A stretch of DNA of 64,000 bases, taken from the IMG/VR virus record IMGVR_UViG_3300020154_000003, positions 248,001 through 312,000 of that record. One strand, written 5' to 3'. A program made the translations under genes and the position numbers. Positions 57,480-63,998 of this stretch are shown here, in pieces. The notes under the pieces were generated by a model, which saw only the letters and a program-made list of their open reading frames with translations, did not search any database and had not been told where the DNA came from. The first letter of the stretch is position 1; each line of letters begins with the position of its first letter.

Positions 57480-58262
57480 TTAAAAATCCAAACTAAATTG
57501 GACTGTTCTAAATATTGTTGAATCCTTCGCAATAGGGTTGTTTAACTTACCCACAGCAACAAGATTATTATTATCGTCAAACACACCCACTTCACTGATT
57601 TGTACGGGGCTTGTGCTATCCCAAGTTGGGTTTGTTGTTGAATTATATTGATTCAAAGGCAATACAATTGAAATATCTGTTGTGTAAGCAATCGCTTGAA
57701 TTTCACTCCTAACATTACCAAAGAAGAAAGCTTCTTCTCCAAATGCTAATTTATTTGTATCGCCACTCAGGGCACTTGGATAATTTAAATAATCTAACGT
57801 ATAGGTCTCAGCATCATTGATCTCTTGAACGCCAATAGTTACTATGGTAGCAGAATTAAATGCAGCCTTAGGTATAGTTGTGCCTGAAAAAGATTCATAA
57901 CCATCTAATTGATTGGTCAAATCAAGAATTTTCCATCCATCCACATCAGGAGTGACCGTTGATCCAGTACCATCTACAATTTGAGCAACGCCAAAGAATT
58001 TAGTAGCTGACCAACCTTCACCCGTTTGTCCTGAAGCAATGTCTAAGGTATTTTTCATAAATGGGAAGAGAGACCCATCAGGAACAATAATGCTCAACGT
58101 CTTATTCACCAAAGAATTCGTTTCCAATTTCTCAATGTAATTACAATGAATACTAGGCGAATAACCATAAGATTTTCCTAATTCATATGCATTGGCAGTA
58201 CCGCCAGTAACTGAGTTATCTCCTAGTAAGTATGTAAAAAATATTGTTTTACCTAAACTCAT
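57480..58262 (-). CDS. putative virion structural (baseplate/tail) protein
   Basis: C-terminal VQISEVGVFDDNNNLVAVGKLNNPIAKD; S/T/G-rich; structural context. Confidence 0.65.
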   Translation of the reverse strand: MSLGKTIFFTYLLGDNSVTGGTANAYELGKSYGYSPSIHCNYIEKLETNSLVNKTLSIIVPDGSLFPFMKNTLDIASGQTGEGWSATKFFGVAQIVDGTGSTVTPDVDGWKILDLTNQLDGYESFSGTTIPKAAFNSATIVTIGVQEINDAETYTLDYLNYPSALSGDTNKLAFGEEAFFFGNVRSEIQAIAYTTDISIVLPLNQYNSTTNPTWDSTSPVQISEVGVFDDNNNLVAVGKLNNPIAKDSTIFRTVQFSLDF

Positions 58263-58264
58263 AA

Positions 58265-59851
58265 TTATGAATTATTTACAAATGTAACTGAACCATCAGT
58301 CAAGGTTATTTCTACCGTATCAGTTAACGTATTGTTAGGTGCTGGTACAAAATTATCAGTAACAACAATTGTGTATGTTCCAGTACCCAAATTACTGAAG
58401 ACATTTGATGCTTGACTAACGCCACCATTAATCGAATAAACTGGTTCAACAGCATTGCTAACGAATACAGTGATTTTACCATCGCTGACGCTAGATGATG
58501 TTGGATTGTTAATAACAAATGACATGTTAAACATATTGTTAACTGGCTCACAAGCAGATAAGTTGAAGCCAATCGTGGCTCTAGGTAGTGTCCAGTTTCT
58601 ATTCGATTTATATGTCATGGCGAATAACAATTCCTGATCTTCGATAACAAAAATCTTAAGATCATTGAAAACTTTCCCAACTACGTTTCCAAATCTGTCA
58701 ACCAGATCATGATACGTTGCAGTCAATCCGCTCAACACTTTTGGTGTGCTGTCACAACTCAACTTCAAACCAATAGTCCCACCAGTTTCATAATGCCACA
58801 TGATTGTTGGTAGTTCCAGCACCGGAGTATCTTCAAAAAGTCCTTCACCATAATGATTTGATGGAGATGCATTGGTGAAATGGATAATACCAATTTTTTT
58901 TATCTCCGGGGTTAAACGTTCTATGTAACGAACAAACCCACCAAAGCTTTTAGTATAATATTGTGAATAATTTCTATCTGTCGATGCAACACCTGCAACT
59001 TCCTCAGTAAAAACAATCGCCATATTCCAAACTGGAACATCTCTAACTGGACATATACAGTTCTCCAAAAATGCAATCACACTTTCTTCAATGAAATCAG
59101 TTACATATGGTGCGCTATAATATGTTTGAATTGAATCACCGCTAATTTCTCTATTGTTATTGTTTGGATACAAAAATGCTCCTGCAGCTATCGATCCTCC
59201 TTCACCATTGAAGTTAGGAAGTGGTTTATCAACAGTCACAACTAAATTATCTGTGCTCAAAGCACCTGAAATCTTGTTTTCTATTTTATACCAAATATAA
59301 GGTACAGCCTCACTCACTGTCGGACTGACAGTTCCACCGCTTATCAATGGATTTGACCATTTTACAAGTAAATAATCACCAATTACAGGTTCTGTAATAT
59401 TTGCCAAATAAGTTGGTGATTTTCTGATGGTTAACGTGGTTCCACCTGCTACTGTTGCAATGTTTATCTGCATGTCAGCCTGTTTCATTGTGAATGAATC
59501 GGTCAACAGCGTTGCGGATGTGCCAGTTATTGAGAAGAATCCACGTTCAGTAGCACTATTTGTTAAAATATTAGTGTTCGAAACAACGGTAGGTAGTGCA
59601 GTATATATTGTTTCCTCATCATCGCTATTCTGTAGAATATGCGAAATAAAAGTCGGATTATTGTCCTTTGGCCTGAGAATATTGGCCATAAACGCATCAA
59701 AACTGATGTCATTATTAAACCCATAGTCAATCTCACTATCACCAACAGCCCACTTAGTCATGGTCAATTTACCTTGTGAAAGTAATTGTCTACCAACATT
59801 CGTTAATTTAATGTTAATTACCGTAGGGTTATTTTTTAGTATGAAAGACAT
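58265..59851 (-). CDS. putative virion structural protein with C-terminal Ig-like/SprB-like repeat
   Basis: INIKLTNVGRQLLSQG...WAVGDSEIDY N-terminus; YSINGG...NVFSNLGTGTYTIVVTD C-terminus. Confidence 0.7.
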   Translation of the reverse strand: MSFILKNNPTVINIKLTNVGRQLLSQGKLTMTKWAVGDSEIDYGFNNDISFDAFMANILRPKDNNPTFISHILQNSDDEETIYTALPTVVSNTNILTNSATERGFFSITGTSATLLTDSFTMKQADMQINIATVAGGTTLTIRKSPTYLANITEPVIGDYLLVKWSNPLISGGTVSPTVSEAVPYIWYKIENKISGALSTDNLVVTVDKPLPNFNGEGGSIAAGAFLYPNNNNREISGDSIQTYYSAPYVTDFIEESVIAFLENCICPVRDVPVWNMAIVFTEEVAGVASTDRNYSQYYTKSFGGFVRYIERLTPEIKKIGIIHFTNASPSNHYGEGLFEDTPVLELPTIMWHYETGGTIGLKLSCDSTPKVLSGLTATYHDLVDRFGNVVGKVFNDLKIFVIEDQELLFAMTYKSNRNWTLPRATIGFNLSACEPVNNMFNMSFVINNPTSSSVSDGKITVFVSNAVEPVYSINGGVSQASNVFSNLGTGTYTIVVTDNFVPAPNNTLTDTVEITLTDGSVTFVNNS

Positions 59852-59870
59852 ATATTTTTTAAATAAATAC

Positions 59871-60812
59871 TTACTCCTTTAATTTTAACGCTGCGGCTGT
59901 TTCACATATTTCATTGACATAGAAGCTTGAGCAGTACATGTTACTTACATACGACAAATCTTCATCGAATGGCGATTTTGCAATGAAATCACCTTTATAA
60001 AACATATGTGATCTATCATTTTCGGTAACACCTGCATTATGATAGATATTATTACTTTCTAGTTCAGATACTGGCGAAGTTGCCCAACAAAACGACAATT
60101 CATCAATTATTTCCGTATCCAGACCCATCAACCAAATATTCCACAACAATGCCCACATATCAGCAGTCCACGATTGTATTGGTGATTGAACTGCGTTCTT
60201 CTCAGAGGTTACCAACATTGTTTTATATAAAATGTTACAATCTCGTTCCACTTTATTCCAGAAATCGTATGATAAATTAAAATTTGAAGTAAATAAGTAC
60301 TGAGCACCACCGGACATTTCTTGGTTGTTGATTACATGTGTTGGATTGATTCCCACTACTCGACACATTTTTTCTAATAACCCTAAACCCTTTTCTCTAA
60401 TATATGCTGCACCGATATACGACCTAGTATCGGACACGTATATTTTTCTTTTGTCAATATAATCTTTCAAGTTTGGTATTTTTGTAAATATTACATCGCA
60501 GTCCATATATAAAACTGCTTTATTTTGTAATATGTCTGCGTATTCTCCAGTATATAATTGTTTAATTATATGAGGTCTAAGACTAGGTAAATATAATCTT
60601 TGAGACAAGTCCCTCGTATCTGGGAGAAAAATTACTCTAGCATCAGTAGTTTCTTTAAACTCAATTGCTTTTTCATTTATCCCAATTTTAGGATTATAAC
60701 CAAATAGTATAATAGTTTTATCTTCAATTCCAAATTTTTTGAAATTGTGCATTTGAACTTGTAGTTGCCAAACGTAGTAATCTGTATCTGGTTGAGCAGT
60801 TAAAAACTTCAT
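59871..60812 (-). CDS. GT-A glycosyltransferase resembling HPAT/SGT1-type protein O-glycosyltransferases
   Basis: DxD (YMDCDVIF); N-terminal YYVWQLQVQMHNF; WTADMWALLWN; IYHNAG. Confidence 0.65.
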   Translation of the reverse strand: MKFLTAQPDTDYYVWQLQVQMHNFKKFGIEDKTIILFGYNPKIGINEKAIEFKETTDARVIFLPDTRDLSQRLYLPSLRPHIIKQLYTGEYADILQNKAVLYMDCDVIFTKIPNLKDYIDKRKIYVSDTRSYIGAAYIREKGLGLLEKMCRVVGINPTHVINNQEMSGGAQYLFTSNFNLSYDFWNKVERDCNILYKTMLVTSEKNAVQSPIQSWTADMWALLWNIWLMGLDTEIIDELSFCWATSPVSELESNNIYHNAGVTENDRSHMFYKGDFIAKSPFDEDLSYVSNMYCSSFYVNEICETAAALKLKE

Positions 60813-60826
60813 ATTCTATTGATTAA

Positions 60827-62239
60827 TTATACTGTAAGAGGCAGCTTAGAAGAAGACACACCAATACTTCCAGATAAAGTATCAAGTGATGCGTGATCCG
60901 AAATATTCCATGTAATTCCTCCATTATTAGAGTATAAATACGATTTATTTAGAACTGTAGCACCAACAAATATTAACATACCTATGTGAGAGTCATCAGG
61001 GCTTTCAATTTGTGAGAATGAACTTCCAGCGGTGCCTGCTCCCAATATATCTTCAATAGGTTGTGTTATTGTCCAAGTTGCCCCATTATCAGTAGACCTA
61101 CAAATATTTAATTTTGATGAACTTCCAATAGGTTTAGCTTGCAATACTAAAGTACCATCAGAAAGTACTACCAATCCAGTATAGTTCATACCTGCTGGCG
61201 ATGTAGCTAACGTAGTCCATGTCAATCCACCATCGGTAGTATTAATTAAAACATCTGAAGTAGAACTACCGCCATTTGTTCTAATCATCCAACCAAATCC
61301 ACTAGTATTTATTGAAAGTGAAGAGAAAGTCGATGATGGACTACCTAGACCAGTTGTCAAACTACCAGTAATATTTGTCCAAGTTACACCACCATTAACA
61401 GTTTTAATTAAACAAGACGTGAAAGGGCCGGGGTAATGATACAAACCATATCCTATAGAAGCATTTGCGAAATGCCATTCTTGAACAGCCATAAGAAGAC
61501 CCGGAAAAGTTACTACACTCCAACTATCCCCACCATTAGTTGATCGGTAGATATTATTACTCACCGTAGGGCCAGCCATCAATAAATTTTCTGTTACTGC
61601 GTATACGCTAATAATATTACTAACACCTGCAGGTTTATTAGTCCAAGTAGTACCACCATCAGTAGTTTTCATAAACCCATCATACGTACTATTAATAACG
61701 TAACCAGTTAAATTACGGAATGATCCCCGATATGCTGATGTAGTCATACCCGGAATTGTAATTTCGCTCCAATTAGCACCTCCATCAGCAGTTTTTAACA
61801 TTTTTCCTCCAATTGTAGGCGAACCAAATCCTAACCAGTAATAAACTGGTGGTGGTAAGGTTGTTGTGGTCGTAGTGGTTGTCGTTGTTGTGGTCGTAGT
61901 TGTAGTTGTGGTGGTTGTTGGTGGTAAAATAATTGGACATGCAGTATAATCAATACCAACCGATTGAGTTTTTAATGTAGCTATTTGACCACTAGTGATG
62001 TCTGTAACCAATTCTAAAAATTCATCTCTTCTTGCATAGTATTCAGCATCAGTCATTAAACTAACATCACTTTCATTTATTGCTGGATATATATTAGTAC
62101 TACCAGTAAACGCATTTTTCATATCAAATGAAAAATATGTTGCGCCAGTAGTCGTTACTCCATACCAATCAGTGACACCAGTGATAACACTTTTTATCAG
62201 TACCGACCTTCTATATTCACCGTTTTGTATTATACTCAT
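60827..62239 (-). CDS. Asp-box (BNR) beta-propeller protein with poly-Thr linker; putative virion appendage
   Basis: Repeated (K/R)(S/T)xDGGx(T/S)W motifs; PP-T20-LPPP linker. Confidence 0.8.
   Translation of the reverse strand: MSIIQNGEYRRSVLIKSVITGVTDWYGVTTTGATYFSFDMKNAFTGSTNIYPAINESDVSLMTDAEYYARRDEFLELVTDITSGQIATLKTQSVGIDYTACPIILPPTTTTTTTTTTTTTTTTTTTTLPPPVYYWLGFGSPTIGGKMLKTADGGANWSEITIPGMTTSAYRGSFRNLTGYVINSTYDGFMKTTDGGTTWTNKPAGVSNIISVYAVTENLLMAGPTVSNNIYRSTNGGDSWSVVTFPGLLMAVQEWHFANASIGYGLYHYPGPFTSCLIKTVNGGVTWTNITGSLTTGLGSPSSTFSSLSINTSGFGWMIRTNGGSSTSDVLINTTDGGLTWTTLATSPAGMNYTGLVVLSDGTLVLQAKPIGSSSKLNICRSTDNGATWTITQPIEDILGAGTAGSSFSQIESPDDSHIGMLIFVGATVLNKSYLYSNNGGITWNISDHASLDTLSGSIGVSSSKLPLTV
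61859..61918 (-). repeat. 20 consecutive Thr codons using all four ACN codons
   Basis: Codons read directly from the DNA. Confidence 0.9.
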
Positions 62240-62240
62240 A

Positions 62241-63998
62241 TTATGATGTTATTGGGGTTCTCTCCCCTGAAAAGTTAATAAATAATTGTCCTGTTGGTTG
62301 ATCGATAAATGTCCATGTCGTACCACCATCAGTAGTTCTAAAATATCCGTTATTGGACGTGCTCGGATCAATAATTAAATGACCAGATGCAACACCAATA
62401 TTTTCATCAATGAAATAAAGTGCTGAATATGCACGACCAAGAGTATTAACTGCAGTCCACGTAGTACCACCATCTGTTGATCTAAGTATTTTTGCATCGT
62501 TTCCAGTATAACTCATTATCACGAAAACAATATTATCATCAATAGCCCATACTTGATTAACACCAAATCCATCAGCAGGTAGATTAGCACTAATATCAGT
62601 CCACGTATCGCCACCATCAATTGATTTGTATAATACGTTATCTGTACTCGTGCTATGTGTAAAGTATGCAACATTATTAGATGGTGCGAACGAAAGAGCC
62701 TTAGGTTGGCCAACAGGAGTCGCCAATATTTTAGTCCATGTTGTACCACCATTTGTGGTTTTATAAACGCCTTGATAACCACTATTAAACCCGTGATACC
62801 CTATTGCGTAACCAATATTTAAATCTTTAAAGTGTATACCATTTACAGCCTGACTAACTGCCCCAATAACTAACTCAGATCGAGACCAAGTTACACCGCC
62901 ATCTGTTGATTTTAAAAATCCGTTAGCCCCAACAGCACATAACACATTACTATTTAATGCTAACACAGCCTTAATACCACCACCATTATATCCTGCAGAA
63001 TTTAATGCAGGTCTTCTACTAGTCCATGTAGCACCTCCATCATTTGTTGTAATTATGTGAGGGAATGTTGCGTTTGAAGTAGATATGGTTGCACCCATAA
63101 TACCAACTTGCCCAACAAAACTAACATGACTATATCCAACACTATCAATTGTGGTTTGTGTGTTGACTGAAGTGAAGTTAAGTCCACTATCAATTGATCT
63201 ATATGCTGATTCGTTAGTTGTGTACCCAAAATAATCTGCTGCCCAAAATGATGGTATAGAACCAGCAGGTATTGTTATGGCTTCATTAACTGAGAACGGT
63301 AAAGGAGCGTCAATTATAGCACCGCTATCTGATGCTGTTATGGTGTTAATGTTAAGTGTTAGTGAAGTAGATGCGTCATCACTACTATTAGGACTGTGTG
63401 CGCTCATAGTTATCTGAATTGTCAGAGAATCGCTGCTTAACATAGTGAAGGATGATGAATTGTTTTCAGTACCATCAGTCACTTCGTTCGAATATATCAC
63501 ACTGCCATTCTTTATAATTTCCACTAAATTGCTTGCATCACTATCACCTTCTACCGTTGCAATTTGCCCCAAATCAAACCCTAACGTAAATATTGTTCCG
63601 TTAGATAAACTTGGGGTTATAGCAATTTCATATTCTAAGAATATGTCTGCATTACGATTTCCAGTAGTTGCACCGGAAGAGTATACTCTTTCAATTTCAG
63701 TCATAAAGAATTCATATTCATTAATAACATATTCTTGTTGAACACAAATAATATCATCCCACGCAAATGAAAATGTAGTATCCTGTACTCTTCTAACAAA
63801 TTCACTACCGTCATTACCTAAATGGTTTAATGACTGGTCAAAACTAACTCCCCTTCTATATGGAAATTTTTGCTTAGTAAATGCTGTGTTTCTAACCAGT
63901 ACACCACCTTTCTTTAGAATTATTGTGGCACTTAATAATTGATCTATGAATCTATGGAAAAAGCTATTGAACTTATTGATAAATGGATAAACGTTAGT
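62241..63998 (-). CDS. 5'-truncated large structural protein with C-terminal Asp-box propeller (runs off the window)
   Basis: The frame of track ORF 62241-63704 stays open to the window edge (TNVYPFINKF...VRNTAFTKQKFPYRRG...FFMTEIERVY); about six SxDGGxTW repeats. Confidence 0.8.
   Translation of the reverse strand, partial: TNVYPFINKFNSFFHRFIDQLLSATIILKKGGVLVRNTAFTKQKFPYRRGVSFDQSLNHLGNDGSEFVRRVQDTTFSFAWDDIICVQQEYVINEYEFFMTEIERVYSSGATTGNRNADIFLEYEIAITPSLSNGTIFTLGFDLGQIATVEGDSDASNLVEIIKNGSVIYSNEVTDGTENNSSSFTMLSSDSLTIQITMSAHSPNSSDDASTSLTLNINTITASDSGAIIDAPLPFSVNEAITIPAGSIPSFWAADYFGYTTNESAYRSIDSGLNFTSVNTQTTIDSVGYSHVSFVGQVGIMGATISTSNATFPHIITTNDGGATWTSRRPALNSAGYNGGGIKAVLALNSNVLCAVGANGFLKSTDGGVTWSRSELVIGAVSQAVNGIHFKDLNIGYAIGYHGFNSGYQGVYKTTNGGTTWTKILATPVGQPKALSFAPSNNVAYFTHSTSTDNVLYKSIDGGDTWTDISANLPADGFGVNQVWAIDDNIVFVIMSYTGNDAKILRSTDGGTTWTAVNTLGRAYSALYFIDENIGVASGHLIIDPSTSNNGYFRTTDGGTTWTFIDQPTGQLFINFSGERTPITS

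Follow-up and report, generated by a model that had tools for sequence, protein, structure and literature searches.

A putative virion O-glycosylation module in phages: a GT-A glycosyltransferase encoded next to poly-threonine tracts of structural proteins

Introduction

Glycosylation of virion proteins by phages has one precedent. In mycobacteriophages, phage-encoded glycosyltransferases (GTs) glycosylate capsid and tail-tube subunits at Ser/Thr-rich C-terminal extensions, and this modification alters immune recognition (Freeman et al. 2023, as described in PMC12619734 and PMC10877033). In the literature searched, glycosylation of bacteriophage virions was shown experimentally for mycobacteriophages only (2023), and nothing was found that links hydroxyproline O-arabinosyltransferases (HPAT, family GT95) or poly-Thr tracts to phages, nor any report of glycosylated virions of Gram-positive phages. 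Here we analyzed a 64,000-nt window of viral DNA (positions 248,001-312,000 of IMG/VR record IMGVR_UViG_3300020154_000003; all positions below are those of the window), in which a GT gene lies directly after the gene of a 470-aa protein carrying a run of 20 threonines (T20). We propose, with a probability of about three in four, that this GT is a peptidyl-Thr O-glycosyltransferase which modifies poly-Thr tracts in structural proteins of its own phage, either ahead of virion assembly or in the course of it. The same literature describes neither the enzyme family nor its poly-Thr "sequon", its spread over several phage groups, or its connection with HPAT and with ribosomally synthesized and post-translationally modified peptides (RiPPs).

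Among peptide-modifying enzymes, the plant families GT95 and GT96 are described as related, and HPATs are anchored in the Golgi as type II membrane proteins (PMC8012813). The literature treats HPATs as specific to plants (PMC4738400). For GT95 the predicted fold is GT-A-like, for GT96 it is a novel one (PMC8476585).

Results and Discussion

The glycosyltransferase and its poly-Thr neighbor

The two genes in question and the parts of the 470-aa protein are as follows.

59871..60812, minus strand: predicted GT-A glycosyltransferase, 313 aa, soluble (PHROG 4417; conserved residues, AF2 and Foldseek)
60827..62239, minus strand: 470-aa appendage protein, proposed acceptor (N-terminal domain, PP-T20-LPPP linker, seven-Asp-box YCF48-like propeller)
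61937..62239, minus strand: N-terminal domain of the 470-aa protein (about 100 aa), conserved among relatives' poly-Thr proteins
61847..61924, minus strand: PP-T20-LPPP linker with mixed Thr codons, proposed O-glycosylation tract (T20 at 61859-61918)
60830..61846, minus strand: C-terminal BNR/Asp-box beta-propeller of the 470-aa protein, seven [ST]x[DN]xGxxW motifs

The GT gene starts 14 nt downstream of the 470-aa gene. An earlier note on this DNA had picked out the motifs YYVWQ, DCD and WTADMW in the GT; all are present (residues 12-16, 104-106 and 215-220) and coincide with the most conserved columns of the family, so they are not chance strings. In an alignment of 43 homologues there is no variation at W15, D104, G168, G169 and W224, and conservation reaches 90% or more at Y12, Q16, D106 and W220; in a set of 80 sequences D104 and D106 are 100% and H258 is 97% conserved. 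The conserved positions together are Y12, W15, Q16, D104-x-D106, G168-G169, W215..W220..W224, H258-N-A-G261 and K273, and the DxD...H pattern suggests that D104, D106 and H258 bind metal.

Scans with Pfam and NCBIfam gave no family name for the GT. PHROG 4417, which is listed as "unknown function", matches it at full length (E = 1.3e-63; residues 1-304 against profile positions 1-290 of 293). By exhaustive profile search the family comprises 1029 clusters at 50% identity, 600 of them with E <= 1e-30, and it is present in at least 563 IMG/VR loci. In L007, L008 and L009, among which are contigs longer than 350 kb, the GT gene is present as a tandem pair of paralogues.

The AF2 model of the GT (pLDDT 96, pTM 0.92; built on the 43-sequence alignment) is that of a Rossmann-like GT-A fold, DxD-type glycosyltransferase. 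Foldseek comparison of the model with PDB gave 96 matches at E <= 1e-3, with GT-A enzymes leading. The best structural relatives are retaining GT-A enzymes, namely the UGGT catalytic domain (GT24), glycogenin and XXYLT1 (GT8), plus WbbM; none modifies DNA, and one, WbbM, is an O-antigen enzyme. All are distant (TM-score about 0.45-0.5, identity 8-13%). The protein has no membrane segment or signal peptide (highest 19-residue hydropathy 0.87), and its N-terminus leads directly into the first strand. A sequence search of PDB returned matches to TAL-effector repeats only (E >= 0.003), which were discarded as spurious.

The protein encoded directly upstream reads ...ACPIILPP-T20-LPPP..., and thus has the PP-T20-LPPP linker seen in the earlier note. 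Because all four Thr codons (ACA, ACC, ACT, ACG) are mixed in the T20 tract, its coding points to a tract maintained at the protein level and not to a DNA microsatellite. A relative with 85% DNA identity has T21 at this place, and relatives further away have T18-T21. The plural "Thr/Ser-rich appendage proteins" of the same note was an overstatement for this DNA, where one poly-Thr tract is visible in 64 kb.

After the tract, the 470-aa protein has seven [ST]x[DN]xGxxW Asp-box-like motifs, with matches to PF02012 (BNR; 28.1 bits against a cutoff of 27) and YCF48 and a borderline one to Sortilin-Vps10 (32.8 against a cutoff of 33). The cellular homologues of this propeller are YCF48-related proteins secreted by the type IX secretion system in Bacteroidota and Ignavibacteria, and an NCBIfam model named "glycosylhydrolase" resembles it below threshold; from these two likenesses the distal propeller is probably a glycan-binding or glycan-cleaving host-recognition module. 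The N-terminal domain shares invariant R10, F44, Y51, Y67, R70 and C101 with the poly-Thr proteins of several relatives. Its AF2 model (pLDDT 76) found no match in PDB (best E 0.39), and it is presumed to be a virion-attachment module. Residue C101 (61937-61939) is also the Cys that precedes the tract, and a Cys no more than 10 residues before the tract is found in 32 of 69 non-identical poly-Thr proteins near a GT, with 18% expected from random windows.

Linkage of the glycosyltransferase to poly-Thr tracts

We collected 87 loci with a GT homologue from IMG/VR, Logan, GenBank phages and the window, called the genes and scored every protein; a tract was defined as a 12-residue window with at least 11 S/T/P. 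The pairing of GT and tract which the earlier note had seen in a single locus proved strong and position-specific among these relatives. The gene at position -1 (same strand, directly upstream of the GT) is tract-positive in 42 of 86 loci, about half, compared with 8-12% at positions -2, +1 and +2 and about 1.5% at four or more genes away (0-4% by position). After dereplication at 60% GT identity, 15 of 32 genes at -1 carry a tract against 6 of 457 (Fisher p = 1.9e-15), and in 24 of 34 GT clusters a tract lies no more than two genes away. When the definition of a tract was relaxed, the -1 gene was positive in 55 of 86 loci against 19 of 805.

Thr makes up 64% of the tracts, Ser 13% and Pro 9%, and most tracts (83 of 88) are internal linkers. 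The domains flanking them fall into 29 N-terminal and 57 C-terminal sequence clusters, so what the GT is linked to is the tract itself, whichever protein family carries it. On the GT tree the trait occurs in scattered places; it takes 17 changes, where shuffled labels take about 24. The reverse test started from random IMG/VR poly-Thr open reading frames (ORFs), each with a run of 13 or more ACN codons and a long enough stretch of sequence after it; 5 of 43 have a GT of this family directly downstream, which is far above any plausible base rate.

The pairing extends to cultured Gram-positive phages. In Enterococcus phage phiFL1A the GT homologue gp51 lies between the major tail protein gp50, whose C-terminal end is ...NGTTTTTSTTTTTTSSTTTTTTTQASSK, and the tail chaperones. 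The tail tube protein gp18 of Clostridium phage phiCTP1 ends with ...EETTTTTNAPITTTTTTV and is followed by the GT. In Lactobacillus phage iLp84 the capsid protein ends with ...VPTTTTTTTSK, the tail protein ends with ...GETTTTTTTSK, and a 126-aa Ig-like poly-Thr protein precedes the GT; phage Iacchus is similar. The major tail protein of Staphylococcus phage SA2 ends in T9, and a poly-Thr ORF overlapping the end of the major tail gene (L089:5667-5930) precedes the GT, while Enterococcus phage VPE25 has an unannotated poly-Thr-coding stretch between the capsid gene and the GT (L088:5753-5900). The VPE25 stretch and the SA2 ORF may be frameshift or read-through extensions appending glycosylation tracts.

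Cellular homologues and fusions

About two thirds of the best 150 family matches are proteins of 450-800 aa with the GT domain at the N-terminus. Their fusion partners are mostly further GTs (Glyco_transf_7C in 12, GT2-type in 6, and one each of GT6, GT25 and GT1), and methyltransferases are also among them. A separate search added a GT11 fucosyltransferase and many radical-SAM/SPASM fusions. Such partners would fit a GT that initiates glycosylation and leaves its product to others for extension or modification. Many members (P0121-P0179; L050:9992-11986, L058:939-2933) are proteins of about 660 aa, GT plus radical-SAM plus SPASM, which look peptide-maturase-like; the radical-SAM/SPASM part has weak similarity to spiro-SPASM, ScmF and anaerobic sulfatase maturase.

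The contigs of three cellular two-domain homologues were inspected, and all three are RiPP clusters of the lanthipeptide type; none is a polysaccharide locus. These clusters contain LanC-like and LanB dehydratase genes, a precursor with Lant_leader_dom, an ABC exporter with C39 peptidase and a radical-SAM gene. The precursors beside the GT homologue have a GG leader and Ser/Thr/Pro/Cys-rich cores. The clusters of contigs L212-L214 look like those of undescribed glycosylated RiPPs.

L212:3825-5573, L213:3411-5156 and L214:6237-7889: cellular two-domain homologues of the GT
L213:3014-3268 and L214:9219-9476: examples of Ser/Thr-rich precursors

Relation to plant arabinosyltransferases

The earlier note had called the GT HPAT/SGT1-like. 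In the ESM Atlas, by language-model features and predicted structure, it appears nearer to HPAT-family proteins than to any other named family. Clusters of Chlorophyta HPAT+ShK proteins reach TM 0.74 with the GT and GT8 proteins 0.62-0.64, and haptophyte HPAT proteins have 171-178 of 256 features in common with it, all of these values being given without alignment or E-value. In the phage clusters near the GT, PF23452 (HPAT) is found in 10-40% of members. A second, distant family member (P0092) gave the same HPAT picture, plus a bacterial PqqD (RRE)-HPAT fusion cluster. A length-shifted search that started from a fusion protein gave prokaryotic and viral fusions only.

Among sequence profiles, PF23452 does not match the window GT at E <= 1, and PF01501 (GT8) does not match it either. 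PF23452 is the top Pfam family among the GT relatives, but below threshold (5 of 43 and 1 of 80 match, best E 0.0038). So the apparent nearness to HPAT comes from predicted structure and features, the family profile misses the window protein, and "HPAT-like" is a supported resemblance in models, short of demonstrated family membership.

The gene block and its viral context

The two genes belong to a minus-strand block (57480-63998), a tightly packed run with intergenic gaps of 1, 14, 19 and 2 nt. In the order of transcription it encodes the C-terminal part of a large protein, the 470-aa protein, the 313-aa GT, a 528-aa protein and a 260-aa protein. The further members are listed here.

62241..63998, minus strand, frame open to the window end: C-terminal part of a large fibre-like protein (identity to relatives' fibre-like proteins)
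58265..59851, minus strand: 528-aa conserved protein, 19-nt gap 3' of the GT (counterpart in L003)
57480..58262, minus strand: 260-aa conserved protein, final gene of the block after a 2-nt gap (68% identity to its L003 counterpart)

A promoter and terminator scan of the block found no terminator-like site and was otherwise uninformative. Pfam, NCBIfam and PHROGs gave no functional name for the 528-aa or the 260-aa protein. The 135-kb relative L003, whose GT is 64% identical, has the same gene order, and genes for gp25-like and gp6-like baseplate wedge subunits lie just upstream of the shared block. The nearest cultured relative is Chryseobacterium phage MA9V-3 (GT 40% identity), in which the gene following the GT has a T4 Gp10_C/tail-fibre domain. 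Because the GT is flanked by these genes in L003 and MA9V-3, the window block is by synteny the distal end of a baseplate/tail-fibre module, which agrees with the structural block described in the earlier note.

Downstream of the block are replication genes (T5orf172/MUG113 gene, exonuclease, primase and sigma factor), and the remaining window, with rIIA/rIIB, RNA ligase and SbcCD, is that of a large lytic-type phage. A pooled protein scan of window positions 1-57000 found thioredoxin, HSP20, an ECF-type sigma factor and rIIA/rIIB. The same region encodes a GmrSD_N-domain protein, a nucleoside 2-deoxyribosyltransferase-like protein, a patatin-like phospholipase, and two HAD_SAK_2 "Swiss-army-knife" RNA-repair domains with an RNA ligase.

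The neighboring proteins vary among relatives. What had been taken for a second Asp-box protein (62241-63704, 487 aa) is not a separate gene, as its frame is open to 63998. The first 86 residues of this frame are 74-77% identical to residues about 958-1043 of fibre-like proteins of 1208-1380 aa in L003, L007 and L012. Those proteins have poly-Thr right after a conserved Cys (...C-V/T-...TTTT); the window protein has no tract at this junction and instead continues with a different domain and a propeller of six Asp boxes, a pattern suggesting that modules are exchanged at a fixed joint. The 528-aa protein matches residues 1-524 of an 810-aa protein of L003 (L003:10970-13402) with 67% identity; the L003 protein adds a T19 tract and an extra domain absent from the window protein. 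L003 has four poly-Thr tracts and the window one, and by this comparison related phages differ in the number of appendages with poly-Thr extensions. The 1380-aa poly-Thr fibre-like protein of L003 (L003:4439-8581) ends in a HINT/intein-like domain (PT-HINT, Intein_splicing, below threshold). Upstream of the GT of MA9V-3, three consecutive proteins of 117, 245 and 428 aa (L001:9606-11995) have a homologous N-terminal segment of about 50 aa, and in two of the three this segment is followed by a poly-Thr tract and then by C-terminal domains that differ.

Proposed function and alternatives

Since the pairing of GT and poly-Thr recurs in many unrelated phages, phages with this pair probably sugar-coat a stalk of their own virions. 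The synteny, the cellular homologues in RiPP clusters, and the apparent nearness to HPAT with the kind of fusion partners are the reasons for a role on peptidyl threonine. The proposal of the earlier note that the phage glycosylates a mucin-like stalk on its own virion proteins is thereby supported by the -1 linkage, by structural relatives that do not act on DNA, and by the homologues in lanthipeptide clusters. The fold, the conserved catalytic-type residues, the tract, the adjacency across phages and the peptide context of the homologues are established here; threonine as acceptor, a sugar and its donor, the stoichiometry, the virion location of the 470-aa protein and the benefit are our inferences.

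The mechanism may be pictured as follows. The 470-aa gene and the GT would be transcribed together as part of a late tail/baseplate block. At that stage of infection the soluble GT would use a cytoplasmic nucleotide sugar and a metal bound by DxD/His and O-glycosylate threonines of the PP-T20-LPPP linker, before the 470-aa protein is mounted on the baseplate; it may also modify further tracts encoded outside the window. The product would be a mucin-like, sugar-coated stalk between the N-terminal domain and the distal Asp-box propeller. As in mucins and in the linkers of cellulases, the sugars would keep the linker stretched out and shield it from proteases. Because the window has no second GT, the modification may be a single sugar per Thr. 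The general O-glycosylation of Bacteroidota hosts is periplasmic and could not reach virions assembled in the cytoplasm, which would explain why a phage carries its own GT. The benefit may lie in stiffening or extension of the linker, protection from proteases, altered adhesion or antigenicity, or mucus binding.

Several points weigh against this proposal. The case for the GT family, for every member, consists of genomics and models, and it is synteny that places the 470-aa protein in the virion. No sugar-nucleotide genes are found within the visible 64 kb. Of the sampled poly-Thr ORFs, 88% have no GT of this family nearby, so such linkers exist without the enzyme. Conversely, in 21 of the 87 GT loci the nearest three genes or 3 kb hold no tract, and six-frame translation of 3 kb on each side did not reveal one; therefore the acceptor may sometimes be elsewhere or different. 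WbbM, a good PDB neighbor of the GT, acts on O-antigen.

The last three points also speak for an enzyme that acts on the host envelope. On that account the GT modifies lipopolysaccharide (LPS), capsule or teichoic acid or masks a receptor, possibly for superinfection exclusion or progeny release, and poly-Thr runs are the plain flexible spacers common in tail-fibre modules; GT8-like GT-A enzymes do include LPS and O-antigen enzymes. We consider it improbable. The enrichment is specific to -1 (49-64%), with 3-15% at -2 to -6, hence it does not belong to the structural module overall. The GT of Gram-positive siphophages has the tail-tube gene on one side and the chaperones on the other, and is thus a neighbor of core proteins that bear poly-Thr tails. 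The cellular homologues are in RiPP clusters and not in polysaccharide loci. The GT is soluble and lacks a membrane segment; a membrane GT of the seroconversion type was considered and rejected.

The RiPP clusters with their short precursors could also speak for another peptide or protein as the target, such as another site of the virion, a host protein or a small RiPP-like peptide, the adjacency then coming from shared regulation or a chaperone-like role. The fusion of some phage GTs to radical-SAM/SPASM peptide-maturase-like domains and the enrichment of Cys just before the tracts would be in line with it. However, the tract is the sole feature common to very diverse neighbor proteins, and no conserved small precursor-like ORF lies beside the phage GTs, so that this explanation too appears unlikely. 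It is very hard to credit that the GT glycosylates hypermodified bases of phage DNA against restriction, like the alpha- and beta-glucosyltransferases of T4. Phage GTs are classically DNA-modifying, and the window does encode the GmrSD_N-domain and nucleoside 2-deoxyribosyltransferase-like proteins. But no hydroxymethylase, TET-type or hydroxymethyl-pyrimidine pathway genes were found in the 64 kb, homologues lie inside the tail operon of temperate siphophages of 36-40 kb, and the GT-A fold is unlike the GT-B fold of the T4 enzymes. The poly-Thr linkage and the RiPP contexts would be left unexplained.

Returning to glycosylation of the phage's own poly-Thr tracts, a wider form of the proposal can be offered only tentatively. 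It would be a widespread, unrecognized "mucin-type" cassette of phages, in which an HPAT-like initiating GT right after a poly-Thr acceptor builds a dense glycan brush on capsids, tail tubes and appendages of Bacteroidota-type and Firmicutes phages. In many lineages the product would be elaborated by fused GT2/GT7C, GT6, GT11, methyltransferase or radical-SAM domains, and the same clade, used in lanthipeptide clusters, would be the prokaryotic and viral sister of GT95.

If the proposal is right, a separate and far more widespread family does the job known from mycobacteriophages, with a GT directly after a poly-Thr tract as its signature, and hundreds of "hypothetical" phage genes could be re-annotated. 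In phages of Enterococcus, Staphylococcus, Lactobacillus and Clostridium, the poly-Thr tails of capsid and tail-tube proteins would then be likely glycan carriers, which bears on the pharmacology of phage therapy, on adherence to mucus and on the biology of dairy phages. For glyco-engineering there would be a peptidyl-Thr O-glycosyltransferase that is soluble, cytoplasmic and has a very simple sequon, and the HPAT family, held to be "plant-specific", would have relatives in prokaryotes and viruses. Since some of the phages concerned are in culture, the idea is open to direct test.

Comparison with known systems

Pro-flanked dense Thr runs form extended, protease-resistant, sugar-coated spacers between globular domains in animal mucins and in the linkers of secreted cellulases. 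Those are made in secretory compartments by unrelated enzymes, whereas the present proposal places the reaction in the bacterial cytoplasm with a phage enzyme. GTs of known glycocins (SunS-type) belong to GT2. The cellular homologues in RiPP clusters are close to the profile of our GT family (E about 1e-92 to 1e-107); they have a second GT domain and presumably act on short exported peptides, whereas the phage GT has a single domain and would act on large structural proteins.

Like the role proposed here, HPAT (GT95) and the peptidyl-Ser alpha-galactosyltransferase SGT1 (GT96) initiate peptide O-glycosylation on repetitive, proline-flanked runs of hydroxy-amino acids. HPAT has a Golgi type II membrane anchor, and the phage GT is soluble without anchor; the acceptor of HPAT is peptidyl hydroxyproline and its donor UDP-L-Araf, while the likely acceptor of the phage GT is Thr in place of hydroxyproline. 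GT8 and GT24 enzymes (glycogenin, XXYLT1, UGGT) have in common with the phage GT the GT-A fold, the DxD and a downstream conserved His, and several of them act on proteins or protein-linked glycans. Their TM-score to the GT is however just about 0.45-0.5 at 8-13% identity, without a PF01501 match.

The closest layout is that of the mycobacteriophages, as far as it is described in the sources cited above. Here as there, a phage GT is genetically linked to Ser/Thr-rich segments of structural proteins, and the Gram-positive relatives mirror the arrangement with poly-Thr C-terminal tails on capsid or tail-tube proteins and an adjoining GT. The mycobacteriophage acceptor is a C-terminal tail, whereas that of the window would be a pure poly-Thr internal linker of a tail appendage. 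The hosts here are Bacteroidota-type and Firmicutes, and with the mycobacteriophage enzymes the comparison is one of published description.

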